A stretch of DNA of 64,000 nucleotides from Auanema rhodensis. Lineage: Eukaryota; Animalia; Nematoda. Position 1 is the stretch's first letter, and the number at the start of each line of letters is the position of its first letter. Below the pieces are notes generated by a model. It was not told the DNA's origin and did no database searches. It saw only the letters and a program-made list of their open reading frames with translations. Positions 494 to 26,890 of the stretch are shown one piece after another. Position numbers and translations under genes: made by a program. The stretch covers positions 12,586,001 through 12,650,000 of the forward strand of contig OZ059897.1 in the NCBI GenBank assembly GCA_964057225.1. Reading direction: 5' to 3'.

Positions 494-3400
494 CACTGCG
501 AGTACGTATTCTGGATCCTAAGCATCAAGTCTTAGGAGTTGGTCAGAAAGCACAATGGATTTGTCAAATAGTTGGCAACATAGTAAGCTTATAACTACTA
601 TAACATATAGCTAAAAGAATGATTATTTATGATTCAAATATGAAAATTATTTTTTTTTTTTTCAAAAATCAATAAAATCATTCTTTTAGTTTAGCATAAC
701 AAATACTTTATAACATTATAATTTATTAAACATAGCCTGTGTTGTCTTCAATTTTAGCCATCTAACGCTCATTTGGAATGGACACGTGTTGGATATGCTA
801 CGTTACCATCTAAAGCTTATACGGATGAAGGATATCTATCTTTGGATAATGTACAAGAAGAAGATGAAGGACAATATCGTTGTACCGCAACAACTATACA
901 TTCATATGCTACTGATGATGCCTTACTTACCATTAGTCAGCAGCCTAGTATGCTTTTCAATCACTCAAAATGCTTCACCCACCTTAGTTTCAATATCAAA
1001 AAAGCTTAGAACAATGCTTATGCTTCATTCTTTAGTTTGTATTCAGTTTTCAACAGTTAAGGATATTTTAATCATTGTTAACAGAAAATCAGATGAGAAA
1101 CCTATAGCTATCATCTTAACAACATAACTGTCTGATTCTCGTGTTTTCATGATATCTCCTACCTTTGTTTAAACAAAAGTCTAAACAACTGAACTATATG
1201 TATGTGCAGTCTTTTCGTTTTTTGAACAAAAAACAGAACTTTTTATTTAGTTCTCAATGTTTTAGTTTAGAATATATATTTTATGAGTTTAAGCTATTTT
1301 AACAAGCTTAAATTACAAACGTTTTGTCAGCTTTTTTTGTTTTGTTTTAATTTTATTTTTATAATTTATACACAAAGCTTTATTCCACATAATATTTATC
1401 ACATATAGCTTTATGATGTTAAGTTTCGCTTAAACTCAGCCGTTATGCACAATATTTCAAACAAATATTTCAAGAAATTATCTAAAGATTGTTTGTTAAA
1501 GTTTGTTAATTTGATATGTTTAGGTGGACGTCCTCCTCAGCCAGTAATTGATCCACTTCATCAAACTGTTATTGAAGGAGATGCTGCATCATTCAGATGC
1601 TGGGTACCTGGAATTCCTGATTGTCAAATCACTTTCCATAAGGTAATATCACGCTTTTTCTTGATAGAATTATAATTTCTTTTCTTTTAGGAACATATTG
1701 GTGGCCCATTACCTCATGGAGTTTACCAAACTGGTAATGCTTTGAAGATTCCAAGAGCTATGCTTAAGGATGCTGGAAACTATATCTGTACAGCCATCAA
1801 TCAATATGGAATTGGACAATCACCAAATGCTCGTTTGGATGTTGTTAGACGTTCGTTTTCTATTATTCTTTGAAATTAATTTTACCACATATGTTACATC
1901 AATGAAACCAATGATATTTCAGCTGTTCAAAAGCCAAAGGTTGATCCAATTGAGCAAACTGTAAATGAAGGTGAGCCCGCCCGCTTCCGTTGTTGGGTTC
2001 CTGGAAACAACGATGTTCAATTGAAATGGACTCGTATCGGACAACAACCATTGCCAAGTGGTGTACAAGAGCAACAAGGAATTCTTCATATTCCTAGCAC
2101 ATCTCACAATGTAATAATCAATATAATATATAAATTTATTATAATTTAACAATTGTTTTTCAGGAAATTGGACAATACGTTTGTACTGCAACTGATCCTA
2201 GAGATGGAAAGCCACAGGATTCAGATCCAGTTACTCTTAACCTTCGTAAACCTGATGGTATGTTTTCTTATAGTTTAGTTTCAAAATAATATTCAAAATC
2301 AGTATCATGTAAAACATATATTTGTTATTTTAGCTCCAGCTCAGCTTCCACAAGTTGATCCTCCTGAGCAAACTGTCAATGAGGGAGATCCAGCTCAATA
2401 TCGTTGCTGGGTTCCAGGAAATCCACATGCTCAACTTCGTTGGACTAAAGAAAATGGCGAACGTATGTTATAGATAAATCTTTAACTCTAATTAAATTTA
2501 AAATATTTCAGCTTTGCCAGAAGGAACTCTTGAACGTGACGGATACCTCCGATTGAACAACGTCAAGATGAGCGATGCTGGTCGTTACATCTGTACCGCT
2601 ACAGATCCAAGAACTGGAGCTCCAAGTGAAGCTCCACCAGCTACTCTCAATGTCAAGCAAGGAACTCCTATTGTTCCACAAGTTGATCCACAGGAACAAA
2701 CTGTTAACGAAGGAGAGCCATCTCAAATCCGTTGTTGGGTACCAGGAAATCCAGATATTCAACTTCGTTGGACTAAAGAGGTAAGATTATTCAATTATTC
2801 ATTTTTTGTTCTAATATTGATGAAAATATTTTCAGAGACGTCAACCACTTTCCCATGGATCTACTGATCGCGATGGTGTATTATCTATCAGCCGTACCAT
2901 GAAGGCTGATGAGGGAAGTTATGTCTGTACTGCTATTGATCCTGTATCTCGTCAACCTATTGAAGCCCCACCAGCCAGAATTAACGTTAGAGCTCGTAAG
3001 TTTAAGTTTTTTAAGAATTTTTAGGCTTCTCCATTTCTTCTGGAAGCATGTTCCTACCTCTTACTGCAATATTTCCCCTTTTTTTCCAACAAGCATGCAC
3101 ATTCTTTCAGCACTGAAACCAATCGTTGAGCCAAACGAGCAGAGCATTCCTGAGGGTTCACCATTCAGAATTCGCTGTCATGTCCCAGGACACCCAGAAT
3201 TAGAACTTAGCTGGCGTAAGGCAGAAGGAACTGTAAATGACTTAGCTGATGAACGCCAAGGACATCTCACTGTCCAACAAGCTGAGATCACAGATGCGGG
3301 AGATTACATCTGTTCCGTTGATGATCCACATACCGGAGAGCCAATAGACTCTGATCCTGCTACTGTACATGTCACTTCACAAGTCAGACCACCAGTTGTG

Positions 3401-6400
3401 GATTTGAGTAAGTTTGACACAACTTTATAACAATCACGGCTTAAACCTATCCTTTCCTTTCAATCACACTTAATTTTACAACTATCTATTTTAATTTTAT
3501 TTTAATCACTTTCAAAAACTTAAAAAAAAATTAAAAAACGTACACACGAGTTCAATTGGAAACTCTACCCGTTTGGAATTGCTGTGATTTTGCACCAATT
3601 GCCGTGAAAATAATAACTTTATGCTATGACACACGTTCTCTAGGTGACAAGGGACCAGAAATTTCTCCACCTCATCAGAAGGTTCCAACCGGAGATCATG
3701 TAACGATCAAATGTTGGGTCGAAGGCGATCCAAGTGCTCATTTGACCTTCAAACGCGTTGACGGAAGTCAATTGCCTTTCGGCTCATCTGAGCAAAATGG
3801 AGTTCTCTCCATTCCAAATGCTCAACCAGCCGATGAAGGAGATTACGTATGCGTTTATCATCCAGCTGCAGGAGGACATCCAAAGGAATCTTCCATCAGT
3901 CGTCTTGATGTTGAATCTAGTATGTTTGCTGTGAAGGAATTAACTATACGTGTGGCATGTCACTTATTGATGTGAATACTATACTAACAAACGTCTAGCT
4001 TGGAAATCTTTCGGATTTGGAAGTTCCAATTCAATGAAACATGACGTTAGCCTTGTCGTTGTCTTTTAACAGAAACTCATGTCCGTTGTTCACTGAAGAA
4101 TTGTATCATTGAAGTGTTTTCACTGTTTACAGCTGGTCAGCCTCCTCGCCCTGTGGCTACACCAGCCATCCAGAGCGTTCGTCGTGGATCTCCAGTCCGA
4201 TTTGTTTGTGTTGCACATTCATCCACACCAGCACGTATAACTTGGACATTTGCTGACGAGCAAACAGCTTTACCATCATCTGTCCGTCAAGAAGGAAATG
4301 ACATAGTCATTGATTCTGCTTCTGATGGTGATGCTGGATCGTATATCTGCTCAGCTACAAATGAATTTGGGCGTGGTGTTGCTGAACCAGTTAGATTAGA
4401 AGTTACAGATGGTAGTCGTAAACATCTTAATACGAATTGTTTTATCTTAACTTTATTTATTTTCGGGAAAATAACCTTTGGGCTCACAAATTCACTTTTT
4501 TTTCAATTTATTATGGACAAAAGATATATTAAATTCAGAAATAATTATATGTTATTTAGATGAGCAACCACCAACTGCTCGTGTTGAGCCACGTACTTGG
4601 AATGGAAGACCAGGAGATCGTCACCAATTCAAGTGTATTGTTACTGGAGTACCAACACCAAAGGTAAATGTTTCATTAAATAATCAATATTTATACCAAA
4701 TTACTCTAGGTTGTATGGTCTGGACCTAACGGATCCCCACTTCCACATGATGTAACTCCATTAGAAGACAACATTCTTGATTTTGCTCATGGACGCACCG
4801 AACTCAATGGAGACTACACCTGTACAGCTACCAATCCAGTTGGAGTTGTAAGTCTTTTTTTTAGAAAGATTATACAAAATTTGTTTACTTTTTTAGGCTT
4901 CTGATCACGGAGTTGTCAATATTGGACCATCTTTGACTGTCAAGACAACACCTGCTGGGCCAAGACTTGTTCTTACTGTTGGAGAACCACTTCTTGTGAA
5001 ATGCGAAGCCTTCGGAGAGCCTGATCCAGAAGTTGAATGGCTTCATGACCCTGGACCAGAGCGTGGAGATTTGCCAGATGACTACAAGCCAGTTACCATC
5101 TCTGAGCAATTCATCCGTCATCCAGCTATTGGACTTGGAAACTCTGGACTCTACACATGCAAGGGATCTAACAGCCATGCAACAGCTACTAAAGATATTT
5201 ACATCGATGTTGTTGAGCCATCTCGTGTTGCTACTGTATCTATTTTGGGAGGATCCACTCAATGGTTTGAACAAGGAGAACCATCTGAACTCATTTGTAC
5301 AGCCACTGGTTCATCTCTTGTCGATCGTCTTGAATGGATTAAGGTTGATGACCAGCTTCCAACTGACGTCGAAGAGCACAACGAACCAGGACTTCTTCAC
5401 TTCCCTAACTTCAAGGTAACACAAAAGTTTTTTTATGTTTATTCATCGATAATTTTTAGAACTCTTATGCTGGAGAATATGAATGCCGCGGTTATCGCCA
5501 CGACGAACTGATTGCTACAGCTACCGTAACTGTACATTCAGCTACTTCTCGGTTAGATGATGCTAAGGTTGAAGTAGATCCACCACGTGTACGTGTTATC
5601 AATCAAGGAGATTCTATTGTACTTCGTTGTTCTGTATCAGGTAAATATTTAATTTAATCACTGTGCATGTGTCTGCTCCATCTGTCCATTTGTCCCTGCG
5701 TCATTAGCTTTAGTTCTTATCTGTCCTGTGTCCAGATAGTTTCTGCGTTTAGTTCTAGTTCAAATATGTGCGAAGCGTCGAGTGTCTCGCATCTATGTAT
5801 GTGTTCAATGTGCTTTCAGATCCAAAATCTCGTGTGCTATGGTATCACACGCAAAACTTCGTTGATGCTCATCAAGTTGGAGCAAACATCTATTTGCATC
5901 TTTTACATGCTGATCTTTGTGATCGTGGATTATACTATTGTACCGACGAATTCAATAACTATGAGTTAACCCAAAGTGCAACATGGCTTGTTGTACAACA
6001 AAATCATTTTTATGGTGATCATTTATATGTTTTTTAATTTATTTATTAACATTTGTTTCTATTTTGCTTGATGCCTATATATATAATATGTGTGTGTGTG
6101 TGTGCGTGTATGCGTGTGTGCATGTTTAGTACTAACATTTCTAATATTTTCACAGGAATTTATCAGCAGATTATCACCAATTTTTTGGAGATTATTAACA
6201 TAATTTAAGCTTTTTAAACATTTCTATTTATTAATAATATGCAATATATGTATGTATATGTTTCTATATAGCTAACTTTTTTGTATTGCTTTTCGTCGTT
6301 ATCATCGTCATCGTCGGCACTATGCTTCACAATAATTGTATGAAGATGTGAATCTCTTCAGGAGCTAAGAATGGAGAAAACTTCGAATGGGCTTTATTGA

Positions 6401-9400
6401 GAGGAGGAAATATTGTTAGAAAGCTTGGAACTGAAGCTACTCTCACCATTAATAAGGCTGATCCAACTAATGATTTCGGAGTCTACAGATGCAATGTTGA
6501 AGACAATAATGGAATGGTTATCGGAAGTGCATACACCGCTGTTACTGTTGGATTTGATAACAAGCAGAGTACGAATTACATACAAACACCCAATAACTTA
6601 TGAAAGATATTGTACGAAAGAGAGATAGAGAATGACCAAGTTTCTACAAAAAATTCAGAAACAAATATTTTAAATTTTTAACATCAAACTTATTAAAATA
6701 TTTATAATAATAATTGAAATATTTAGACGCTCAAATAATGAAGTTTGATGAAAACTCTGATGCTTCATTCGTTTGCCCAGTATATTCTGTTCCTGGATCT
6801 AAGGCAAATCTACTTAACTATATTCAGGAAGAGCAACCAAATATGTTTTAGGTCGAATGGAGTCGTGATGATGGTGAGCTTCCAACCAATGCCCAGCCAA
6901 ACGGCAATAAGCTTGAGATCAAGGACTTCGATGATAAATCATCCGGACTCTATGTGTGCTCTGTACATATCAATGACCGTGTTGTTGAAGGATACGTTCA
7001 TGCTCAGATCTTTGGTATGATTACAGTATGAAATGTATAATACCTTGAATTGTTTCAGTTCCTGATACCATTATTCAAGTTCTTCTCGAAGTTTCCTCTG
7101 AAAACATCAATGTTGGAGAGAGAGCTTGGTTTGATTGTAAGGTATGTCTATATAAATCAATATATATTTGTAAAATTAACAAATTATTTATATTTACAGG
7201 TAACTGGAGATCCATCTGCTGCTATTACATGGCAGAAGGATGGAGCTGATGAGCTTCCTACTAATGCTCAGGTTGGTATTTAATTCTTAGTATATCATTT
7301 CTAAATTACTCATGACTATAACTATTGGAATATGCTGGAACACAGCTTTTACAGCTTTTGAAGTTTCTTATGATTCTTTGGATTACGAATTCGAAAAAGT
7401 TCAAATTCTCTAAATTCCTCTGCTGCTAAGCAAATCGAAAATATTTTTTTAGGAAAATAAGATAGCATGGTTCGATGCTGTATGCAATCGAACTGTAAGT
7501 TTGTAAAATGCGCTCTTAGTTTGATTTTATTTCTCAGCCGATCAAAGCGGTTTTTAGTATTTCATACTTGGGAATTTCTTTCTTCTGATTTTACATCCCT
7601 ATCATTGCACGCTTAATACACTTTTCAATCTTTTATTAATCAAATTTTTATATTAAAAGGAATTATATATATTCCTTGTCTTTGCCAAAAACATACTGAA
7701 GAATATTGAAAAATGGCTTGTTTTTGGGTTGTTTTTTTAATTTTAATTGTTTATGAATAGCATGCTATTGGTATTTATTCTCTTCTTCTGGTTTTTTTCA
7801 GTTATTTTTCAATTATTTGTTTTTCATCCAGAACTATTTTCTGGACTTCAGCTCATCTATGTTCTAAAATAATTTCTTCTATTCAGGTTACTGGTGGACG
7901 TCTCTTATTCACTGATATCACCGAAGATAATGCTGGAACCTATCGCTGTATGGCAAAGACCAAGGCTGGACCATTGGAAACCCGCACGGTCCTCAACGTT
8001 GGACCAGCAAAACGCAAGCGAAAGCATGCTCGACGTGGACGTCACGCCCGGCACCAACGGCGTCATGCTGCTCCTAAAACTCTGCTTCATGAGCAGAAGC
8101 AACAGCAGCAGCGTTCGCTGTTCGGATCCTGGTTCTCCACCCATAACTAACCCCGGTCTGACTCGTCCTAATTCAAGCCAATTCATAATCTGAACTAAAT
8201 CTTTCTCAAACTTATAAAAATCTCTTTAACATCGTTTTACAAAACAATTTGTCCAATGAGTCTTACCTACCTGTTCAATTATCTTGTTGTGTGCGCGTGT
8301 TTTTCTTTTCTAGCGAAATTGGAGTTTGAAATTTCTTTTTTTTTTCTCTTCAAAAAATACTTATTTAACCTATTCCAATCCCGGACATTTCGCGGCTCAA
8401 ATTCACTTGGTCTCTTTCCAAAATATATTTTTGGATTCAGACCATATAGCCTAAGTAAACTGCCACAAAGATTACGGTATATTAGAGAGTATTCTTAAAA
8501 CTTTTTTTTATATTTTCTTTTTGAATTTTCAAACAACCCAACTATGTTTTATCCTAAATCGTTGTCTGGACAAATTGATAGAACAGTCTGATCCGGATCT
8601 TCCCATTTATGGTGCTGTGCATATTACTGCCGTCCTGTTTTTCTTTTATTTTAAAAAAAATTTGAATACATAAAGTGTCTGTCCTTTTTTAATTTTTTTT
8701 TTGTTTTAAATCTTAATCAGTGTGTGTGCTCAAAGACCCCAAAACAATAAATTTTATATTGATTTGTATTAATATAAGCATGATTAATATTTATAAAAAA
8801 AAAAGAAAACAATAACAAAGAATTGTGTTTGATGGGTGGAGAAGATGTGTGACGTATACACGTTACTGTTTGAAGTGCTATATGTGACTGTTTCAAGAAC
8901 TTTTTGACTAAAAGTTCATTTTCTTCAGAATCCGAAACAACATCTCCAATGCCTATCCAAAAATCTATTGGTGAAGAAGTAAGTTTTCAATCTTGAATAG
9001 TGGAATATTTAACTAGTAAGATATGTGCAATGAAACAAAGGACATTTCTTTCTTCAATTCTAAAGGCCAAATAAGAGAAAAGTTTATTCTTAAGTAATAG
9101 AGAAGTAACGAAAACAACCTATCTGATAATAACAAATCAAGGAAGTTGAATATATTATGGAAATTCAGGCTTACTTATCTTGTCAAGCTCCATCTTGGGC
9201 TCGTAATGCAACTTGGACACGTACTGATGGTAAAACTTTATCTGAAAAAGCTGTTGTAAATCATGGAGTATTAAATATTCCAAAATTAGAAAGAGAAGAT
9301 GATGGAATGTATGAAATATATAAATTAAAAATATAATTTATTCAAAATATTATAGTTATTCTTGTATAGTTGATGATAAAGGCCAAATATCAACAACTGT

Positions 9401-12400
9401 AGTTCAATTAGAAGTTTCGGGTAATTAAAAACTTTTATTTTTTAAATATTTATATTCATAAATATAGATTTTGTTCCCATATTTACTGGAAAAGAAGTAT
9501 TGGAATTAGATCCATTAACTGATGATCAAATAGAAAATTTAAATATTCAAATGACAATGAAACCTACAAAAGAAAATGGTATTGTTGTAATTATAATAAT
9601 TTTATAATTAAATTAATTTTCAAAGGAATTTTATTTTCAACTGCAAGACGAGGTGATATTGCTCAATCGATGTATGATCCATCATTTGATCGAAGGCCAC
9701 CAATTTTGGAACATAATACTCGTTTCCAAAATAATTATCTTGTCTATCAATATGATATTGGTTATGGAAAAGGTTATTCAATTATTAGTTTTAATATAAA
9801 TTTTATTTCTCAGATGAAATTGTATCAGCTGAACCAATTGATCTTAACCAATGGAACACGGTCGAAGTCACTAATGATGACAACAAAGGTTTTGAATAAA
9901 ATTTATAGCTGATTATTCAGTAATAAAATTTATTATTTTCAGCTACTATACGCATAAATAATGGACCAAAAGTTGAAAAAGAGCACGGTCCTGTAGTTAA
10001 AAGGCCCGGAAGTAATACGAAATTCATATTAGCTGGCTTAACTATTGACCAGGAAGCTCGTGAAAACTATAAAGATATTGAACGATATGAAGGTATGTTA
10101 GAAGATTATAAAAGAAATATTCAATCAATATAATTAAAATTTAAATAAACAATACTTATATGACGTCATTATCGATGTAATATATGGAGTAATTTGTAAA
10201 AGATAATAGATGAAATGCTACATAAACATGAAAAAGCGGATGTTCATGTAAATAAAATAAAACTTAAAGCATTAAAATAATATTTATTATCTAATTAAAT
10301 AATATTATATTCTTAAATAATGTAATGTAATAGTAATGATATATATGTATTATTGATTTAAAAATTTATAAAATAATAACTCTAATGTACTCTACATACA
10401 TATGTATATGAATGCATGTATGTTTCAAAATTTAAAAGCTTAAGTTTGAAAAAAGAAGACAAAAAACGTTTTTACAACTCAACATTCATACATTTATACA
10501 TATAATATATTCATTCATATTTGGTAGAAATACAATGTTTCAAATATTGATAGTTGGTAAGTTTTTACTTTGATTTGTACTTAATATACATACATATATA
10601 CATAATATATTTTTAAAAAAATTTTATTTTATATTTTAAATTTCAGGAATAATATCTGAAGTTATTGCTTCGGGCGAATCGTTGAACTTAGGTCATGGAA
10701 CTCGAATTATCTCAATGGCCCGATATGATGCATGTACTCTTCAACAACCTTGTCCTAATAATGCTAGATGTCGAATATCTAATAGAAGAAAAGTTTGTTT
10801 AAATCTATTCTCTAAATTAAAAAAAAATTCAAAAAAAACAAATAAAAATTCAAAAACAGCATTTGAATCATCAAAAAACAAAAACATTTTTGCAGGGTTA
10901 TACATGTGTATGTACTGAAGGATTCGTAGGAGAACATTGTCATCTTCGATCTGCAACATGTAAAAATGGTTTGTTTAAGAACAAATTGAACAAAAATAAT
11001 TTTTTCTTCTTGTTTTCTTCTCCATCTTACAAGAACAATCTTAATCAAGTCTGAAAACTTAATTCACGCTCAAAATACATTTCAGAATATTGTCATGAAG
11101 GAATTTGTCTAGAACAAGATGATATGTGGCAATGTGTATGTCCAGCTAATAGCACCGGCTTAAGGTTTTTACATTTCTTTGAAAAAAAAAGAAATTTCAT
11201 ATATAAAAAAATTAATTTTAATTAAATAATTTGTAATTCAGATGTGAAGTGGAAATGAATCCTCCAGATTCTTTGGCTTTCTTACATGATACTTCATTTT
11301 TTTCCATGGAATCACCAAGAAATGTTGAAGAATTTGAGGTTTATATAGTATATTTTGATATAAATGAATATTTTTTATTTTTAGTTAACTCTCACGTTTT
11401 CTCCTCAATCAGTAACTGATGAACATATTTTGATGTATTTGGCTTCGGGCTATAACCCATCTTCAGCAAACCACATGAGTATTTCAATTGTCGATAATGT
11501 TCTCATATATAGCTTTGAAAATGGTCCCGGAAGTAAGTGAAATTTCAAACAAAACTGATCACCAAGGACACGAAAAGGCTTTTTTTTCCAAAGCATAAGT
11601 TGTTCAAAGTTGTTCAGTTCTGTCTTTGCTTTCAAAAATTGAAAACTAATTGAATTTTGAGCTGAAAGAACTCACCTAATTAGACTAGTCTTCCATTAAA
11701 TCTTCTCAATTTATAAATTTTCTAATTTCTTGTTATCAGAAATTTTTTTTCAAAAAGTTTTATATGAATTGAGAAAAAAGAAAATATAAAACAATGGAAA
11801 ATTGGAATACGTTCATCATAATTATCAAACAAAAAAAGTTTTTTTTTCGTTTTTGCAGTTTCTTGAACATTTCGGTAGCAAGATCTCCCCCAAAGTTTTC
11901 ATATTTTGAATGAATTGAGTGTCTTATAGTTCGTCAACAGTTGAGAAGCTCAAGTCTTGAAGATGGCAATGAATATGAAATGACATTACAACGAAAAAGC
12001 GGTCAAACTAACTTGATTGTAAATGGACAACAATATGTATTATCGGTATATCATATGGGAATTTTAAATTTTAATTCAATTTCTCGTATTTTTATAGTAT
12101 TCTCCAACAACTTTCGAGCCTGGCACTGACCTTTTTATTGGTGGTCTGCCTCCTGGTGTTAGCACCCCTGATTCAATTCCCGAAAAATCTTTCAGAGGAT
12201 GTATTCGAGAGGTTAACAGAGATTAATAATGATTCTCAACATTTTCTTATAGATTGTTGTTAATTCAAAGAAAATCGAGTTCAGTGATACGAAATCCTAC
12301 AAATCCGGAGATTTATCAAGTTGTAATGCTTCTCCCACGAGCCCTCCAGAAACTGATTATAATGAATCTGCAGAAAATGATTTAGCTGAATCTGTAAGTC

Positions 12401-15400
12401 ATTCCGATATGGTAAGAAAATCTCAAAACCAATAACATCACTAAGTCATGTTATACAATTTTAGGAAATTGATACTACTTCAACTCCAGATACAGCAATT
12501 GAGCACGAAGAAGAAGAAGAAGAAGAAGAAGGATTATCTGAGCCAACTGAATTGATAACCACGACAACAACTGAAGAGCCATATCATTTCTATGAAACTC
12601 ATCGTGATCATACCCCAGAGACATTAGAATATACAACGACAACTATGATGACCATCATAACATCGGAAGTTCCAACTGTTGAAACAGAAATAGATACAAC
12701 CGAAATGGCAGAAGAAGAGCAACTTCATGAAGCAAATGAAGCGGAAGCTGAACCAATAGAAGAGGATGTAAATGAAAATGTAGTCGATGAGGAAGGAGAA
12801 GTCGAAGGTGTAACAGAAGAAGCTGAAACAGAAGAACATGAAGAGCATGTTGAAGCACATCCAGAGCAAGAAGGGCATGAAGAACATGAGGAACATGAAG
12901 AACATGAAGAACATGAAGAAGATATAGAACCAATGCAAAATAGTGAAAGAGAAGAAGATCACGCATCTCCTCCATTTTATCCAAGTAATCCTGTTGAAAC
13001 CCATCCTGATCAAGAGAATATGCCCTCTGAACAGCAAGAAATCCATCAGGAAGAAGCCATAGATGATGTAAATCAAGTACACAGCATTCCTGTAGTGAAT
13101 GAAGAGCGACATGAACCAATTGAAGAAATAATTGAAAATACTGTTAGCAAATCTGAAGAAATATTGCCCGTTATCATAAAATCAGACAAAAGTCTTGAAG
13201 AAATATTATTCACAACTTCGATTCCAATAGAAGAATTATCTACTACTCCATATTATGGTGATGATGATGATGATGATGAGGATGAGGATGAGGATGATGA
13301 CTATAAGGTGGATGAAACAACAACAACTACGTCAACAACTACAACATCACCTCCAACAACAACAACAACAACTACTATTCCAGATCTAGCTCCAGAGATA
13401 ACTACAATGACGTCAGGTATATTCTTAATATTACGAATGCTTGATCGATCTAATTCCCACAGAATATGATATGTCCGAAAGCGAGCCTGATTATGAAACA
13501 GCTGAGCTGTTACCAACTGATCCAGACTTTTCCATAACTGATTTAGAGAACGATTTGCCTCAAGAGCTTTTCACACCAGGAGAGCCGGAATATATCCCTA
13601 CCGATGAGCCATGTCCAGGTATTCAAGCTTTTCAGATAGTTTATTGACATATACTTTTGAAACTAAAATATTCAACTTGGAAAAGAGTAACATGTAGTAA
13701 CGTAATCAGCATGTGATAATGACCTTTCAAAGTTCATTGTGCTTGTAGAGGAATTGCAAAACATTTCATGTTGATAGTGAAGAATTATCGGAAAATTGCA
13801 AGAAATGAAGAAAATTAAATTGCAAAGTATCAATAGTATTCTATTGCTAAAGTAAAGTTGTTTATCTAAGAGGAAAGGGCCCAAACACCCCCGCGATGTC
13901 TTTCCGCTTTTGAACATTAGCTGCTTCAATACTGTCAAAGAATGAATTAAATATAGAGAAAGAAAAGACAATTTCCACTTCAATTATATATATATTTAAA
14001 TTTCTTCATGTAATTTCATTGAATAACTAACAAATCCTAGATTGGAAATGTTCGATAATTAAAGTTTTAATAGGACTTGTAACGTCATCAAATAGTTAAC
14101 TATTAAGCTTAAACTGAAAGCTATTAGATAGTATAGTAGAAATTTATGTATTAGATTTAAGTAATTTTGAACAAAAAAAAGGAAAAAAAAGTTCCTTTTT
14201 TAATTGAATCGAACAGTTACAAGATTTGAACTTTTCCAATAAAAAAAAAGTTTAATTTGCTTTCCTAAAACTTGTAAAGAACTTTGAACACATTAAACAA
14301 GTTTTAGAGATATTTTTTTATATTCAAAAATATATTTGAAAGTGTATCTTATCATTTATATTTATACATATGTATATGTATATTTGATAAAATATTTGAT
14401 TTACAATAATAATTATTCGTATTTTTGCCTATTTTTCTATAATTTTATTCAATTTAATATTATATTTATGTGTTAAAGACGAAGACAAAAATTATACATG
14501 TACTATTATTATGTAATATAAGAAATAATATTCAACTGAGATCAACTTTATTACGATCATGTCTCTACATAGTTCGAACGCCAAAAATGAAAATAAACGA
14601 ACACGATATCTGATGATGAAGTTAAGATGTGTCGTCGTCAAAATCATCATCATACGAAGCTGATGAGTCGAGAAGTTCATAGAAATATGTATATGAAAAT
14701 GATTAGTATAAAATGAAAAAAAAAAGAAATAAAAATTCATACAACAAATTACAGAGAAATAGAGAGATCCTGAAAAATAAAAGGGTCACACATAGAAAAG
14801 AGAGAGAGAGAGAGGGGGGGAGAGGGAGAGAGAGAGAAAAGAGCAGAAGATGGAAGAGAGAGAGAGAAAGAGAGAAAGAGAGATGTTTCTCTCTCTGTTG
14901 TCTGTTCACTGAAGAAATTTTAGAAAGTTCCATTATGGTTTAACATGATGAGAACTTAAGATTGATGACGGAATATGATTTTTCTGAAACACAAGATATT
15001 CAATTTATTATTGAATTTCGAATATTTCATTTCCCATATTGTAATTATCGTAACGAAATCATAGCCCTATCAGAAGGATAATCTGCTTTCATGTAATCTT
15101 AAAAGTACGAATAATCTTGAGTTTTATCTCTCTAAACTATATGATCTTTTATCTTTTTATTTTATGATTAAAACAAAAGAAAAAATGATGATTAAGATTA
15201 TAATATTATTATTTAATTATAAATATAAAAATTAAATTAAATATTTAATATATATTATACCTTTTTATTTATCTTGTCCTTGGTATCTTGCAAGCATGTT
15301 ATACAAATCACCAAACCGTCTGAAATATTTTGGATTTTTTTCTGAACAAAACAAAAGAAAATTTCAAAAATAAAGATAATTTCTAAAAAATAAAACTAAC

Positions 15401-18400
15401 TTATCCATTTTATTATCATCCTGATATTTGTTTAAAAGACCGTAAAAATCAGTAGAAAATCGCCTGTAAAGTGTTCAGAATTTGAATTTCAAATAGAATT
15501 TTTAAAAAAATACTTGTTAGGTCTTTCTTGATATCTGCCAAGCATAGAGTAATAATCATTATTGAATCGTTTCTGCTGTTGATATTTACTTAGAAGACCG
15601 TAAAAGTCATTGAATCGTCTGAAATATTCAAGTTTAATGTCTTTTCTCATTAAGTTGTTTAAGTTTTTGCTTCAAATTAATACAGTAAACTTAAACGAAA
15701 TGATGTTATTATGGATCAGAAACTATGATAAGTCTACTTTTTGCTTTGTTTTTTCTATTTTGAATTGATTACAATTTCCTTTTCATATCTATTTTTTATA
15801 ATTTTTAAAGCTGGGATAAATATAAGCCAAAGCTTAAGCCTTTCCCTGTGAACGCTAACTCTCCAAAAAAAGAACTCCAATCCAGCTATTTCTTATTAAA
15901 AAACAAAGACACAAATTTATTTTCCTAGGAATTTATTGAATTAAAGTATGAATTGAATTGAATTCATATAATAAGATAAAAATATTATAAAAGAAATATG
16001 GTGGGTGATTGAGAACAAAACAATGGTTATTGATCACATAATCTTTTTTCTGAATATTTGGGATAAATGAATCAAACTTTATACTATGATTTCACTTTTA
16101 TTATATTTAATATGTAAATATCTAGATAATCATTTTATATTAAAAAATGATTCAATCTTTCAGTAGATGTCTCATCTTTTTCAAAAAACATCTACGAAAT
16201 TTACATTTTATAAGGGTAAATACAAGAAAAACTGGCAACTAAACTCCCTAAGCTTCATTCTTTCGTCATTCTCTTCTTATATTTCGTACTCACTCTTTCT
16301 TTCTTAATTTGTCTAGATCTTCTTATGTTTCGAGAAAATGTAGAGAATCCTGATCCATTAATAGACAATTCATCTTGTCTTCTTGTCTCATTTGTACATC
16401 AGATATCTTTCTGTTTCCGCAGAAAACGATTGCAGTCATTGTCAACGAGAGTCACTCCTGACAGCTTTTGATGCACTCGTGAATATCTGAGGTTTTAAAC
16501 TCATGTCTTGAGCATATCTTCTTCCTTTACTTTTTTTTATGAAAGAGAAAAGTATTGTAATTTTCCACAAACAGCTTTTATTCATAAAGAAGAAGAAAAC
16601 GACGAATATGAATTCGATTAACTATGCCATATTGAATAGACACATATGAATTCAGTGAGACTTGGATCAAAAGATTGAACAAAAAAAAACTTTATTTAAT
16701 GACTTTTTCATTCATTCATTCATTAATATATTAATTTTATACGCATTTTTAAGATAATTATACTAAATATTAATTTAATATACTAATGTTTCTATTTTAT
16801 GTTATTTTTAACATATCCTGTATGTGAGAAAAAAAGATCAATTTTTTGTTTAGAAGTTGAAATGTTCAAAGGCTGCTTTCTAATCTTTTAGCCTAATTTT
16901 ATTAGTTTAAAATAGTTTTTAAACAGAAAAAAAGCTACTGAACTTCACCAAAAATGACTACAACTTTGAAACTGGAAAAATGTCTCCAAAAAAACTGTCA
17001 TTTTTTATAATAATCTTTTAATAAAAACTTGGACAAGCTCTTAAAAAATGTTTTTTTTTTAGAATCAAATAGATTTTCTTTTATTTATTAATTTTTTAAA
17101 TTCAAATACATATACAAACATACTGAACCATTTATATTTCAGTTTTTCCCTGTGTATATACGTATATTTAAATATAATATTCATTCGAATGTACAAATAT
17201 AGTTTGATAGAATACCAAAATTTGACAACATTTTTAGAAAAATTAGTATATAGATTAACGAACTATTGAAAATTTGTCTCAAAATCTTTTGAAATATAAA
17301 GAGATATAACGAGAATCCTCATTTGTAAATAGAATAGTATTCTGATCAGAAATCTTAGAATTCGTTAATGAATTCAACATAATTCTTTCCAAAATTTTAC
17401 TTACAAGATACTGATGATGTTTAAAGAAATTAATATCAAGCGATTGTTATTTCAATTCAGAAAAATGAAGGAAAAGATTCAGAAGCAAACATAGTTTGTA
17501 TTATTTTCATCAAGGAAAAGCTAAACCAAAGTCCAGAAAAAGGTCGATAAGCATCTTTTTTCATTTACATTTATGCTTTACTTTTACAAAAATTTTTATA
17601 TTTTTTAAACAAATATATGTCAAATTTAAAAATATTCTTGATTTAAAATACTTTTTAATCTAAATAATGTTGTTATCCTGTGTTGTTAAAGTAACAAATA
17701 GGTTGAATATTACTTTTCGCACTTCTTACAAGAAATTATGAATTCAGATACGAAATGGTTTGTCAAAGATATATAGGTAAAACTAAAGTATTTGAACAAA
17801 AAATTTGTTAAAATAGATGAACTTTCATATATTTTATTATATTATTTATATAATATTATGAAATATTTTATGTTTTTAGTTATATTCAACAAGAAAAAAA
17901 TTCTCATGTAATTCGACATAATGACTGCAAACACAGGCTCAAAATCTTTTTCTTTTCATTATATACAAGTATTCATTGAAAATTCCTTCATAATCTAAGA
18001 ATATGATTATGATGTTCCAACTTTATGAGCATCATGAAAAAGACATTTTTCTAGATAATGAATAGAAGAGAATTTTATATTTTTAAAAGATATTATGTAA
18101 TTTTTAGAAAGAAAAGATATTAAATATAAGAATAAAAAAGAGAAAAAAAGAGAAAAAAAAGTTAAAATAATTAAAAGAAACTCACTTATCTACTTGCTGA
18201 GTAGCATGACAAGTCAGCAAGCAAAATGCTGATAAGCAGATTACGAATAACAGTGTTGATCTCATCATTCTAAAGATCTACTATGTATGTCTATGTCTTA
18301 TATTGAATATAGAAAACATTGTTAAAAACGAAAGAAAAATTTTGAAAATCAATTACAACAGAAAACAAAACAAAGAATGAATGAAATGTGAATGTAGTGA

Positions 18401-20012
18401 AAGCAGCTGAGAAAGATTAGTATGGAAAGAATATTCGTGTATGGTTGAGCTAGCAGTTTCAAGCTACTCCTCCTCTCTTTTTTACCTTTTTAGCTCCTCC
18501 CACTTGCTCAAACCGCACCCTCACATTGAGCTCCTCCCTTTTCTTGATATACTTTTTATATTTCATCTTAAAAAGGAACATAACAATATATAATGACAAA
18601 AAGAATTGAGTATGTAATGAAGAATTATGAAGTTTCGTTCAAAAATTGAAATAAAAGTTATTTGAATGAGCAAAAGTCTTGGAGATTATCAACCAAACGT
18701 AATATGATTTAGATTTTCTGATTTTCGTACTTAAAGTTTTATATAATTATGAATATAATGAAACAAAAAATATGAAGATAAATTACTTTTGTTTGAAGTT
18801 AATATTTTCAAAACATGACTGAATTTCCTATGATTCACAAAGATTTTTTATTATTTAGTTTTATTATTATTGCTGAAACAAAATTTTTGAGTATGAAATC
18901 TCACGCCAACTTCTATATATTTCAAAAAAAAATTGGTTGAAAAGTAAACATTCTGTCAATCCTCATAATTTTCAGAATTTACTACATGTATAAACTAGAC
19001 CAATATGCTATATTAGGTCATTCATTATGAGAAAACGCAATAATCATGAGAACTATATATTCTAAGAATTATAAAAGAATATTTCCTTCAATCTTACATT
19101 TTAAGCACATTAATCTTGAAGAAAAAAAAAACGAAAAAAAAAAAATTTTATGCACATCCGGTCATTCTGTTGGATGTGCATTGCCGTCGTTTCTAATGTA
19201 TGATCTTTTTCAGCAACTGGCTGTATTCCGGAAATTTGTCGTCAAGCTGATTGTGGTAAGAGAATTATTATTTTTTTTATTTTAATAATAATCTTTTTTT
19301 TCTTTGAAAAAAAAAATAATTTTTAAGGTTTAAATGGAAAATGTGTTGAATTCAATACTACACATTACGAATGTGTATGTAATCTATTCTATGATGGACC
19401 TCGTTGTAATATCTGTAAGAAGTTTCTTATTTATATGAAAAACAATAAAAATAGAAGAAAAATTTCATTTAAATCTAATAAAGAAGCCTTTTTTCATTCC
19501 TGTTTTTCCAAAAAAAAACAGCTAATTATGAAAAAAATAACTGTAGCAAAGTGATTATGTGAGAACATACGATTCTGTTTATTTATATTTTTTTTTCTTT
19601 AAATATATAGAATATATGAAGCATAAATATGAATATAGTATATATATATATATATATATCGGGATTCAAGTTTCAATTTTCAGTTAAACCTATTGAACAT
19701 GCTGCCAAGTTTAACGGAGATGCATTTATTGAATTATCTGCTGATGAATTTCCACATTTAACATCTGAGAAGAATGAAGTGATTCAACTTCGATTCAAAA
19801 CAGAACATCCTAATGGAGTAATATAATAATATTTTTGACTATATGTTTATGAGTTATGATAACATTTAGATTATTTTCTGGCAAGGGCAACAGCCGGATG
19901 TATCAGTTGTAGGAGAAGATTATATCTCATTAGGCTTGACCAACGGTTACCTTCACTATTCGTATGTTTTTTTTTTGATAATATTTCTCATATTAGTATA
20001 TGCTAACTAAAT

Positions 20013-20047
<35 letters not shown>

Positions 20048-20875
20048 TCAATATATTCAATATAGATATGAATTGGGTGGAGGAGCAGCAAACATGGTGT
20101 CACCCATAAGATTGAATGATGGTCAAATGCATACTGTAAGATTAGAAAGGTCTGATTTTTCATTTTTATAAAGAACAATAACAAAAGAAATGAAAATTGT
20201 TTTGCAAAATTATTCGGAAAAAATAAAAATTCATATCAAAAGCTAGAATATGAAATAATAGTTTGTTCATTTATTGCATACTGATTGTATGTAAGTGATG
20301 TTTGAATAAGTAACTATAGGACAATATAGTTTAATATGAATATATTAATTAATCTTTACATATTATATCAACTTTCATCATTTTGTTAAGTAAAAATACT
20401 ATTTTTTTCAATTTTTTTTAGACGCGGAAGACGAGGTATTCTCCAAATTGATTCTGAAGCTCCTATTATTGGAATGAGCAGTGGAATTTTAGCAATGTTG
20501 AATGCAGAAGGAAATTTATTCATAGGTAAGAGCTGAAAAGCAACGAGTGTTTTTGACTTAATCCGTAAAAACTATACACTTTTCCTTTTACAGGTGGAAT
20601 ACCAGATATACGGCATTCTACTGGCGGCTTACATCATCAGAATTTTGTTGGATGTATAGCCGATGTAGCTTTAAATGGTGAAAAAGTTGATCTTATGGGT
20701 ACAGCTATTGATGGCAAAAATGTTCGACCATGTGAGGAATGGATTGCACCTAAGCGATGGCTAAAGAAACTCAGAAGGTATCGTTTATTTATAAATATAT
20801 ATAATATATATATAATTAATATAATTAATAGAATAACAAATAAAATAATTATTTCTTTTTAGGCGAACACAATAG
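494..20875 (+). CDS. unc-52: Perlecan/UNC-52 heparan sulfate proteoglycan, 3' portion (domain IV Ig repeats and domain V LamG/EGF), long isoform; 5' end lies outside the window
   Basis: Many spliced Ig I-set exons (e.g. PQPVIDP...FRCWVPGIPDCQITFHK, D-x-G-x-Y-x-C motifs, VEWLHDPGPERGDLPDD, EEHNEPGLLHFP) closely match recalled C. elegans UNC-52. LamG and EGF exons follow (CVCTEGFVGEHC, LFIGGLP...FRGCI, YELGGGAA, NFVGCIADV). Last exon G CGA ACA CAA TAG at 20863-20875; AATAAA at 21024-21029. Confidence 0.96.
5820..6014 (+). CDS. unc-52: Alternative half-Ig exon of unc-52 (DPKSRVLWYH...ADLCDRGLYYCTD...), putatively mutually exclusive with exon 6362-6568
   Basis: tttcag acceptor ends at 5819, and phase-1 entry matches the donor at 5641. 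The exon encodes the Ig C-strand Trp and the DxGxYxC motif. Phase-1 donor G|gtgatc at 6015, or read-through to TAA at 6035-6037. Confidence 0.7.
7887..8150 (+). CDS. unc-52: unc-52 medium-isoform terminal exon with basic tail (KRKRKHARRGRHARHQRRH...LFGSWFSTHN*)
   Basis: Acceptor attcag ends at 7886. The exon finishes the last Ig and reads on into a Lys/Arg/His-rich tail ending LFGSWF, like the recalled C. elegans medium isoform. Stop TAA at 8148-8150. Confidence 0.88.
   Translation, partial: VTGGRLLFTDITEDNAGTYRCMAKTKAGPLETRTVLNVGPAKRKRKHARRGRHARHQRRHAAPKTLLHEQKQQQQRSLFGSWFSTHN
12831..12922 (+). repeat. Coding (EEH)n repeat inside the acidic/Thr-rich insert of UNC-52 domain V
   Basis: Imperfect tandem GAAGAACAT units encode EEHEEHVE...GHEEHEEHEEHEEHEED. 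Nearby are poly-Asp (about 13260-13301) and poly-Thr tracts. Confidence 0.85.
14740..14885. repeat. GA-rich simple sequence
   Basis: Imperfect (GA)n/purine tract. Confidence 0.8.
15265..18268 (-). CDS. Neuropeptide-like precursor, 101 aa, nested antisense in the unc-52 intron
   Basis: Exons 18268-18186, 15618-15514, 15463-15401 and 15319-15265; all introns GT-AG and phase 2. Protein: MMRSTLLFVICLSAFCLLTCHATQQVD KR FNDFYGLLSKYQQQ KR FNNDYYSMLGRYQERPN KR FSTDFYGLLNKYQDDNKMD KR FGDLYNMLARYQGQDK*. Hydrophobic signal peptide and four dibasic sites; a tttag acceptor (possible trans-splice site) lies 1 nt before the ATG. Confidence 0.88.
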
Positions 20876-24390: not shown

Positions 24391-26890
24391 ATGAAGTGGA
24401 CCTTCTTGGTACCACTAATTTCAATTTCAACAGCTTTGCAGCTGTTGCCCAATCATGTTTCACTTAATAATAAAACTAAAGTTATTGAAGCTGATACAAC
24501 TTGGTTAGACAAAAAGCAACAAGAAGTTCAAAGAGTGAGATAATCAACAACTGGATTTATATTGATAATGGATTACTATTTCTAGATTTCGCTTGATGCT
24601 TCAAATAAGGAAAAAGTTATATTGCAATTATTGAACACAAAGAAAACTTTTGAAGCTAGTGCTTCTGGAAATGTCGCTGCAGCCGAAACTTCAGATGGCA
24701 AAAGAGCTCAAGTTCAAAAGATTGGAGAAAAAGGTGGAATAGCCACATATGATGGACATAAGTGGGTGTTCTTCAATCATTTTCTTTTTCGCTTTCAAAT
24801 AATTCATCTGAATAATCGTTTTTAAGAGGTCAAATCCGTGTGAAAGATGATGAAGATGGACGTCATGCTTTCTTGAAAGCAGATGGAAAATATGATTTAG
24901 ATACAGTAATGAGAGGAGATCTTAAGAAACCTGAGGTAAATTGATTCATAATCAATAAAATTAATTTTTTTCAATAACTTTAGACAACAGACTTTGAAGC
25001 AACTAATGATCGTTTTGATTTTAAAGTAAATCCAAGTTCACATGACAATAATACCGGTGAAGGTACATTGGCGTTTAATGATAAGGTTAGATTAACTATA
25101 TAATATAATTAATATATTTATATTGTATAGAAAGAAGGCAAAAAAGGTCAATATCAATATACTATTTCTCAAAATGGAAAACGTACTGATGCTTTTCTTG
25201 CTGGAACCGATAAAGGTGCTGCCGGAGAATTTGGTCAATCTCTCTTCGGTCGCCGTAGTGAGAAATACCATTGTTTAGGTAAGATTTATACATAGAAATA
25301 TAATTTAAAAGTTTTGTTTTAGCTGAAACTCCTGGTGTTTCTCAGTGCTATGATGCTCAGGGAAAATCTGTTGGAAAAGTAGTTGCTGACAAGAATGGAA
25401 ATACTGTTGTGTACAACGACAAGGATGTTCCTATTGGTACCGGCACAGTCCGCAAGCTCGGTGAAAGAAGCTATGAAGTAAACAATTATTTCAAAAGTCA
25501 CATGTGGTTAATTATAATATTTTAGGCTGTAATCTCCAAAAATCTATTTATTGCACGTTTGAAAGATGCTCGATCAGCTCCATGCTGCAAAGAGTTAACT
25601 GGAAAAGAATGCACTCAACCAATCAAGTTAGCGAATCCAACAGTGAGTATAACTTAACAAAAATTATATTATTTTAACTATTTGATATATATATATATGT
25701 CATATTATATAATATTTTTTTATAGTTTTCTCATCCATCTCGCCGAGAAGGTGAAACTGTTCATTTGACTTGGCCAGATTGTTTCGATATGGGAATTGAT
25801 GTAACATTACCTCCAGGTAAAACATTAATTAATTATTTATTATTCGATAAAACTGATAATACTAAATTCAATTTGCAGGAGTTCATATCAACAAATTGGC
25901 CATGAAATTGGATGTCTCTATTCAACCAATTGGTAAGCTTCGTTGTATGGATGTTGCTACTTGTGGTCGAGAATGTTTCTATTGTGACTGGTGCAAAAAC
26001 ACAAGGTTCTATTAAAATTCAAAAAAAAACATTAACCAAGTTTATCCAGACAACTAAAATTATTGGAAAATAATGAAGGAAATCTTTGTCGTGCTACTGG
26101 TGAGAGAACATATCGTTTAACAACCAAGCTTTGTCCACCACCTGAGGATCCAAACTTTACTATGTGTTCAGCTTTCTCTAAGTAAGAAATCTTTGATTCT
26201 TTAAATTTTTAATTATTTTTCTTTTGTAAGATCTGTCTGGCAAAAAGATTATTGGCAAAAGCAAGGAGCTGTTGATGTTTGGATGAAATTCTATGAACGT
26301 GGTCAAACTAGACCTGAGGTAATTTAACAGAAAAAAAAGTAATTAATTCATTGAATACATAATTAATTTCAGTTAGAAAAAGAATTCTTTGCTCAAATAG
26401 ATAATCCACTTCTTGGACGTGCTTTCAAATTAGCTATTATTGCTGAATGGTTAGCAGCTAACAGTATTGATGTACGAATATTATTATTTTTTTTGTTTTA
26501 ATTAAAAGAAAATTATTTAGCAAGGATCATATACTCCTACAAACTCTGAATTATTAGAATTTTGGGTTTCAAAGCGTGATCCAGATCGTCTTCTTGCTTG
26601 TCAACATGCTGTTGTTGATTATGAGATTGAAGGTGCTAAGGTTAAGACAAATCTTCTATTTGAAGCTGCTACAACAGCTAATTCTGTAAGTTTATTGTCT
26701 AAAGCATTACAGTAGTTTATTTTAAATTCTTTTTCAGATTCCTAATATTCTTAAAGACAAAAAATGCAGTGCTTTTGAAAAATTACAAGAAGATCGTTTC
26801 CAACAAGAAGCTCGTGAATACAAAAAGCAAACAGGTGGAGGAAATCTTCTAAGTGGTATTGGAAGCTTCTTGAATACTGTTCGAGGATAA
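24391..26890 (+). CDS. Secreted protein of unknown function: signal peptide, Gly/Lys/Asp-rich beta-type N-terminal region, Cys-rich C-terminal domain
   Basis: TTTTCAG at 24377-24383, then ATG at 24391 (MKWTFLVPLISISTALQLL). About 14 short exons splice in frame. C-terminal motifs include APCCKE, WPDCFD, GKLRCMDVATCGRECFYCDWC and LLACQ. Stop TAA at 26888-26890. Confidence 0.85.

Follow-up and report, generated by a model that had tools for sequence, protein, structure and literature searches.

The processing of neuropeptide precursors by convertase and carboxypeptidase is an established pathway, and many accepted nematode neuropeptide-like proteins (NLPs) are non-amidated, the multi-copy NLP-14 and NLP-15 among them. 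Nematode neuropeptide catalogues are mainly based on C. elegans, so families missing from that species are systematically overlooked. Unnamed NLP families still emerge regularly: PMC8764417 gives nlp-85 to nlp-98, with RPamide, allatostatin-C-like, NPYSW and SLAPTTSA motifs, and Cockx et al. 2022 (PMC9881375) named nlp-99 to nlp-118 on the basis of Steinernema peptidomics. Here we discuss a gene on the minus strand of a 64,000-nucleotide stretch of Auanema rhodensis (contig OZ059897.1, positions 12,586,001 to 12,650,000; we call the whole stretch the window and use its own positions), which lies antisense within a perlecan-like gene. As a system it is not new in kind. The gene is real, expressed and trans-spliced to the spliced leader SL1, and we think it likely that its 101-residue product is a prepropeptide of an unnamed nematode NLP-type precursor family.

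The nested minus-strand peptide-precursor gene that an earlier note on this DNA had described is real. Joining its four exons in silico gives 306 nt, that is 101 codons and TAA, and reproduces exactly the protein of the earlier note. All three introns are GT-AG introns of phase 2 (cumulative exon lengths 83, 188 and 251), and each interrupts, as AA|R, the codon for the Lys in a KR site. The coordinates are in the table. A six-frame pattern scan found no second copy of the peptide motif within the window, and no Rfam family was found in 14000-19500, which includes intron 1.

Table. Features of the peptide gene and its perlecan-like host in the window
Feature	Position	Strand	Content	Evidence
SL1 trans-splice acceptor	18269..18275	-	TCTTTAG followed by A; base 1 of the mRNA is 18269	sequence and transcript contigs
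Exon 1	18186..18268	-	ATG, predicted signal peptide MMRSTLLFVICLSAFCLLTCHA, TQQVD as a short pro-segment, and the first two bases of the codon for Lys in KR site 1	
Intron 1	15619..18185	-	2567 nt, GTGAGT...TTTCAG, phase 2	joint 15618/18186 in four of four runs
Exon 2	15514..15618	-	peptide 1 FNDFYGLLSKYQQQ and peptide 2 FNNDYYSMLGRYQERPN with KR sites	sequence, contigs
Intron 2	15464..15513	-	50 nt, GTATTT...TTACAG, phase 2	sequence, contigs
Exon 3	15401..15463	-	peptide 3 FSTDFYGLLNKYQDDNKMD	sequence, contigs
Intron 3	15320..15400	-	81 nt, GTTAGT...TTTCAG, phase 2	sequence, contigs
Exon 4	15261..15319	-	peptide 4 FGDLYNMLARYQGQDK, TAA at 15267-15265 overlapping AATAAA	sequence; contigs reach 15261
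Host gene, upstream side	9166..13632	+	exons of a perlecan-like domain V with Ig, LamG-like and EGF-like sequence, and one acidic, Thr-rich exon	collinear with JU1783 and C. auriculariae
Host gene, downstream side	19306..20775	+	EGF-like and LamG exons	similarity to JU1783 and C. auriculariae models

Transcripts of the gene are found in four small public runs from one study, each of which contains roughly a tenth of the sequence words in 15100-18400, the same fraction as the exons occupy. Every run gave one contig of 314-322 nt that aligns with 0 mismatches to 18271-18186, 15618-15513, 15462-15401 and 15319-15261, and the joints (15319/15401, 15462-3/15513-4 and 15618/18186) have CT..AC on the plus strand, that is GT..AG on the strand of the gene. 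The junctions that had been proposed, 18186/15618, 15514/15463 and 15401/15319, are thus all present in contigs from the four runs, and the spliced minus-strand transcript on which the earlier note had made the gene depend does exist. The depth of the spliced contigs is 28-126, as against 2-3 for intronic contigs. On the window all four begin at 18271, and that from one run (X1) has 8 extra bases upstream, which in minus-strand reading are CAAGTTTG and together with the AG at 18271-18270 make CAAGTTTGAG. The SL1 leader of nematodes, GGTTTAATTACCCAAGTTTGAG, ends in this way, and the mRNA is thus trans-spliced to SL1 at 18269, the base directly ahead of the ATG, where the earlier note had placed the SL1 site. 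As the form seen is spliced and, in X1, SL1-bearing, we treat it as RNA, despite the run type having been guessed by the tool.

With regard to the protein, the N-terminus has Arg3, a hydrophobic core of 16-17 residues and small residues at -3 and -1 in C-H-A-T, in keeping with the -3/-1 rule, with the cut placed by eye before the T. The predicted signal-like segment MMRSTLLFVICLSAFCLLTCHA, cut before TQQVD, is followed by four KR-bounded units. The four KR sites are kept in the orthologues, and hydrophobic N-termini are present in full-length orthologues, though not in every gene model (P0008 is an exception). The four peptides so delimited have the same sequences as had been read from the DNA before, and have the core consensus F-x(1,2)-D-[FYL]-Y-x-[LM]-L-x-[KR]-Y-Q. 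Their predicted monoisotopic masses are 1749.836 for FNDFYGLLSKYQQQ, 2165.959 for FNNDYYSMLGRYQERPN, 2313.026 for FSTDFYGLLNKYQDDNKMD and 1789.809 for FGDLYNMLARYQGQD, and their net charge is 0 to -2, that is neutral to acidic. Their last residue ahead of KR or the stop is Q, N, D or K, none of the four is followed by Gly, and there is no RF, so that the C-terminal R-F-Gly of the FLP peptides is absent and the peptides are, as had been claimed, without an amidation Gly and not FLP-like. There is also no Cys after the signal peptide, and hence none of the B/A-chain cysteine framework of the INS family.

AlphaFold, run on the family alignment, gave helices only, with pLDDT 69 and pTM 0.23, which suggests that there is no globular fold. 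These helices are of low confidence, the hydrophobic moments of the peptides are not clearly above those of shuffled controls (fractions 0.06-0.31), and we regard the suggestion that the peptides form amphipathic helices as weakly supported. The language-model neighbours in the ESM Atlas (0.87-0.90) are all neuropeptide precursor families, namely PDH, DH31-like, galanin, PBAN, allatostatin and tachykinin, a neighbourhood that, taken as a lead only, would support a neuropeptide precursor. Pfam has nothing above threshold on the 101-residue protein, and weak matches to G1_gp67_C and BBP1_C were rejected as chance. The predicted signal peptide, conserved paracopies flanked by dibasic sites, variable copy number and lack of a fold are together a prohormone architecture.

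A word-indexed search found two relatives. One, in Auanema sp. JU1783, is an unnamed protein of 102 residues with an identity of 75% (E 1e-41), and with 85% amino acid identity for the exon corresponding to exon 2; the other is a Heterorhabditis bacteriophora model that matches across its first 61 residues. Two profile searches, one of them against 1.84 billion representatives, brought in further members from Caenorhabditis auriculariae, Haemonchus contortus, Trichostrongylus colubriformis, Necator americanus, Nippostrongylus brasiliensis, Cylicocyclus nassatus and Ancylostoma ceylanicum, together with two proteins of unknown source; the strongylid members come from six genera. Three strong-looking matches (P0003, P0005 and P0009) are long tandem-repeat proteins without the KR-peptide architecture and were set aside as false positives. 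Every relative is annotated as "hypothetical" or "unnamed". The earlier note had called the gene hidden, and this needs qualification: orthologues had already been predicted in at least nine other nematode species, though as unnamed proteins. No C. elegans homologue was found in the protein searches, including both profile searches, in which a single conserved peptide copy is enough to pass the threshold (a 61-residue Ancylostoma fragment scored 35.7 bits). When the C. auriculariae protein was used as the sole query it retrieved only itself, and thus no orthologue from another Caenorhabditis.

The precursors have 2-4 units. Their alignments show a conserved core, F-N-N-D-F-Y-x-L-L-x-[KR]-Y-Q, and conserved KR/RR sites, next to a variable signal region and variable spacers. 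The strongylid third unit, FP[VA]GLYYSLMGEDLT, has one variable position across five genera. Between the window and JU1783 pS is 0.83, which is saturated, while pN is 0.17 (0.15 over the peptide region as against 0.23 over the signal region), and the protein is thus under strong constraint by purifying selection. Two more family members, on a Logan contig of SRR10595406 and in P0004, have NDYMGLL and RYQQRPYK in common and are probably from another rhabditid or diplogastrid lineage. The Haemonchus orthologue record has alternative C-terminal isoforms (P0010 as against P0013 and P0016).

The introns of JU1783, C. auriculariae and Haemonchus are also of phase 2 and lie within the basic codon, for Lys or Arg, before each peptide. 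In C. auriculariae and Haemonchus there is one peptide per exon, and in the window and JU1783 peptides 1 and 2 share an exon, an arrangement also seen in the Logan contig and P0004. The symmetric phase-2 exons with one peptide each fit exon duplication followed by one intron loss, and judged from these gene structures the paracopies probably arose by phase-2/phase-2 exon duplication with one peptide per exon, one intron probably being lost later in the Auanema-like lineage.

The gene was said to be nested antisense in a perlecan-like gene, and EGF-like and LamG-like exons do lie on both sides of it, the gap between the domain-V exons being about 5.7 kb. That this gap is an intron of the host gene is suggested by homology with perlecan architecture. 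From about 800 to 13632 on the plus strand there is a run of exons collinear with JU1783 models bearing Ig, I-set, Ldl_recept_a, EGF_laminin and Laminin_G domains. Pfam places Ig-domain exons at 2909-5511 on the plus strand, and the translations of 9166-12342 are Ig-like, LamG-like and EGF-like, with EGF Cys patterns and LamG-like motifs. Downstream of the peptide gene the exons have 69-93% amino acid identity to a JU1783 model bearing Pfam Laminin_G_1/2 and also match a C. auriculariae LamG model. By its own Ig, EGF-like and LamG-like exons and by this collinearity the host gene fits perlecan/UNC-52, which is defined by LDLa, laminin-type EGF, many Ig repeats and a C-terminal LamG/EGF domain V. 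The antisense position within domain V is common to the window, JU1783 and C. auriculariae. In the strongylids there was no LamG match within 10 kb of the Haemonchus and Cylicocyclus loci, where the orthologues, each spanning 8-10 kb with one peptide per exon, adjoin UDP-glucuronosyltransferase genes; for the Necator protein and the MetaClust protein no genomic position is recorded.

The acidic part of the host gene, at 12552-13632 on the plus strand between LamG/EGF exons, consists of a 305-residue open reading frame and an adjoining conserved frame, and is extremely acidic and rich in Thr, Glu and His (HEE repeats, poly-D/E and poly-T). Its conservation is weak, with identities of about 54% (JU1783) and about 28% (C. 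auriculariae), and Pfam gave no match to it. The segment could be a mucin-like insert that this lineage has in domain V, or else an alternative terminal exon. Between the upstream perlecan exons and the 3' end of the peptide gene is a long CT/GA-rich tract of low complexity (14790-14900). Downstream of the LamG exons there is, in both the window and C. auriculariae, a multi-exon gene (24439-26116, plus strand, in the window) with 64-89% protein identity to a 602-residue C. auriculariae model without a Pfam match on record. Unspliced contigs of low depth (2-3x) at 16233-16697, within intron 1, and at 18278-18400, immediately 5' of the SL1 site, could represent pre-mRNA, whether from the peptide gene or from its host, or else carried-over DNA; 16698-16737 was omitted from the contig mapping as a repeat.

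The earlier note had recognised no nlp, flp or ins family in the peptides, and the catalogues that we checked gave no match to a named family. The motif is absent from the precursor table for C. elegans NLP-1 to NLP-84 (McKay et al. 2022, PMC8764417, table S2), and KYQ, GLYYSL and NDYM are nowhere in the eight supplementary files of that paper, the few occurrences of RYQ, NDFY and NDYY there being in unrelated precursors. It differs from the motifs given in the same paper for nlp-85 to nlp-98. For nlp-99 to nlp-118 the motif was not found in the supplementary text of PMC9881375, of which one file was incomplete, and the Haemonchus peptides are not listed in the main text of a Haemonchus peptidomics paper (PMC8153747). 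A search of 8.4 million full texts with twelve peptide substrings gave nothing relevant, the one paper found being an irrelevant one on Plasmodium.

The mechanism that we propose for the gene follows the established pathway. The predicted signal peptide would direct the precursor into the secretory pathway, a convertase of the PC2/EGL-3 type would cleave after each KR and an enzyme of the carboxypeptidase E/EGL-21 type would remove the basic residues, releasing four non-amidated peptides of 14-19 residues, each with the core given above, which would act as extracellular signals, most likely through a G-protein-coupled receptor. Several points weigh against this. We infer the neuropeptide label from architecture, and the signal peptide and its C-H-A-T cleavage site are predictions by eye. 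No member has a C-terminal Gly, and hence the peptides lack the amidation common in bioactive neuropeptides. All of the RNA support is from one study and consists of assembled contigs whose RNA status was guessed by the tool. The 3' end of the mRNA is also ambiguous, as AATAAA overlaps the stop and AAAG/GTATAA at 15261/15260 is donor-like. The alignment of each of the four contigs breaks off at 15261, which is four bases beyond the stop, and a single unaligned base follows; judged from the sequence there may be a 3'-UTR intron or alternative 3' ends.

A product that is secreted and cleaved at KR need not be neuronal, and the gene could encode a peptide of hypodermis, gland, gut or the reproductive system, made by a furin/KPC-1-type convertase and being for example antimicrobial, matrix-associated or pheromone-like. 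We consider this unlikely, but it draws on several of the observations above: the peptides lack amidation and have a neutral to acidic charge, the gene is inside a basement-membrane gene in three species, and for libraries made from whole animals the transcripts are fairly deep. However the nematode antimicrobial families (NLP-24 to NLP-33/caenacins, ABFs and cecropins) consist of single peptides, cationic, Gly/Tyr-rich or Cys-rich, and are not known to have paracopies separated by KR. The precursor here has the architecture and the language-model neighbours of a neuropeptide precursor, and the very strong conservation of such short cores across genera fits recognition by a receptor. It is harder still to credit that the product is an intact small secreted protein, or that the transcript is untranslated, with the KR repeats incidental, and we give this very little weight. 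The long helices given by AlphaFold are in keeping with an intact protein, but a pTM of 0.23 means no stable fold, conservation is concentrated in the KR-bounded units, the number of which varies between 2 and 4 from species to species as it does in peptide precursors, and a pN so far below pS shows that there is selection on the protein.

The family might also be not new but a diverged branch of a named one, most plausibly of the NLP-48/52/78 group, in which NQFYGLFKK of NLP-48 resembles the NDFYGLLSK found here; hhalign aligned 11 columns with 55% identity and a pairwise E of 0.026. This we consider quite improbable. The hhalign probability is 1.9%, which is not significant, and for a candidate that was chosen by eye from about 90 precursors. 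NLP-48, NLP-52 and NLP-78 have a defining first peptide, FFSPFR[MI]xG-KR, followed by (N/S)QFYGL(F/Y)K in one copy, whereas here the first peptide is absent and there are 2-4 copies of the unit. The profile searches gave no NLP-48-like protein, and Haemonchus has both NLP-48 and a member of the present family.

We would give about an even chance to the family being a widespread clade V peptidergic system with its own receptor, which was lost in C. elegans or has diverged there beyond recognition. Its range in clade V would then extend from free-living Auanema and an early-branching Caenorhabditis to the entomopathogen Heterorhabditis and to hookworms, trichostrongyles and cyathostomins, and such loss or divergence would account for the family having been missed in catalogues centred on C. 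elegans. There are clear orthologues in parasites of livestock and humans (Haemonchus, Trichostrongylus, Necator, Ancylostoma and Cylicocyclus) as well as in the tractable free-living Auanema. As strongylids have kept the family and C. elegans apparently lacks it, it should be useful in parasite neurobiology, both as a source of candidate ligands for orphan receptors of parasites and as an addition to peptidomics databases. The gene also illustrates cleanly what appears to be expansion by phase-2 exon duplication, and a nested antisense position in perlecan kept in three species.

The remaining resemblances to described systems are slight. In the case of NLP-56 (SFYRMLGH..QLRP) the sequence SFYRMLGHDRQLRP loosely resembles DYYSMLGRYQERP of our precursor if a gap is allowed, but NLP-56 has no repeated KR-flanked unit, and with a hhalign probability of 0.2% it is not significant as a counterpart. 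Given these weak hhalign scores and the presence of both NLP-48 and a family member in Haemonchus, we treat the family as unnamed. The GoLoco motif (PF02188) has a helical F/Y-x-x-L-L-x-R-x-Q pattern in common with the peptides, and the same faint match is pre-computed on the Auanema orthologue; it was rejected, as the score is 22.9 bits against a gathering score of 25.1 and a cytosolic motif does not go with a predicted signal peptide, and the resemblance is probably chance. With the NLP class the precursor has in common the predicted signal peptide, several KR-flanked paracopies and lack of amidation, and also the small multi-exon gene trans-spliced to SL1, while differing in a motif not found in nlp-1 to nlp-84. 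Judged on these sequence features the precursor is a member of none of the named families, and by its architecture it belongs to the NLP class in the operational sense.

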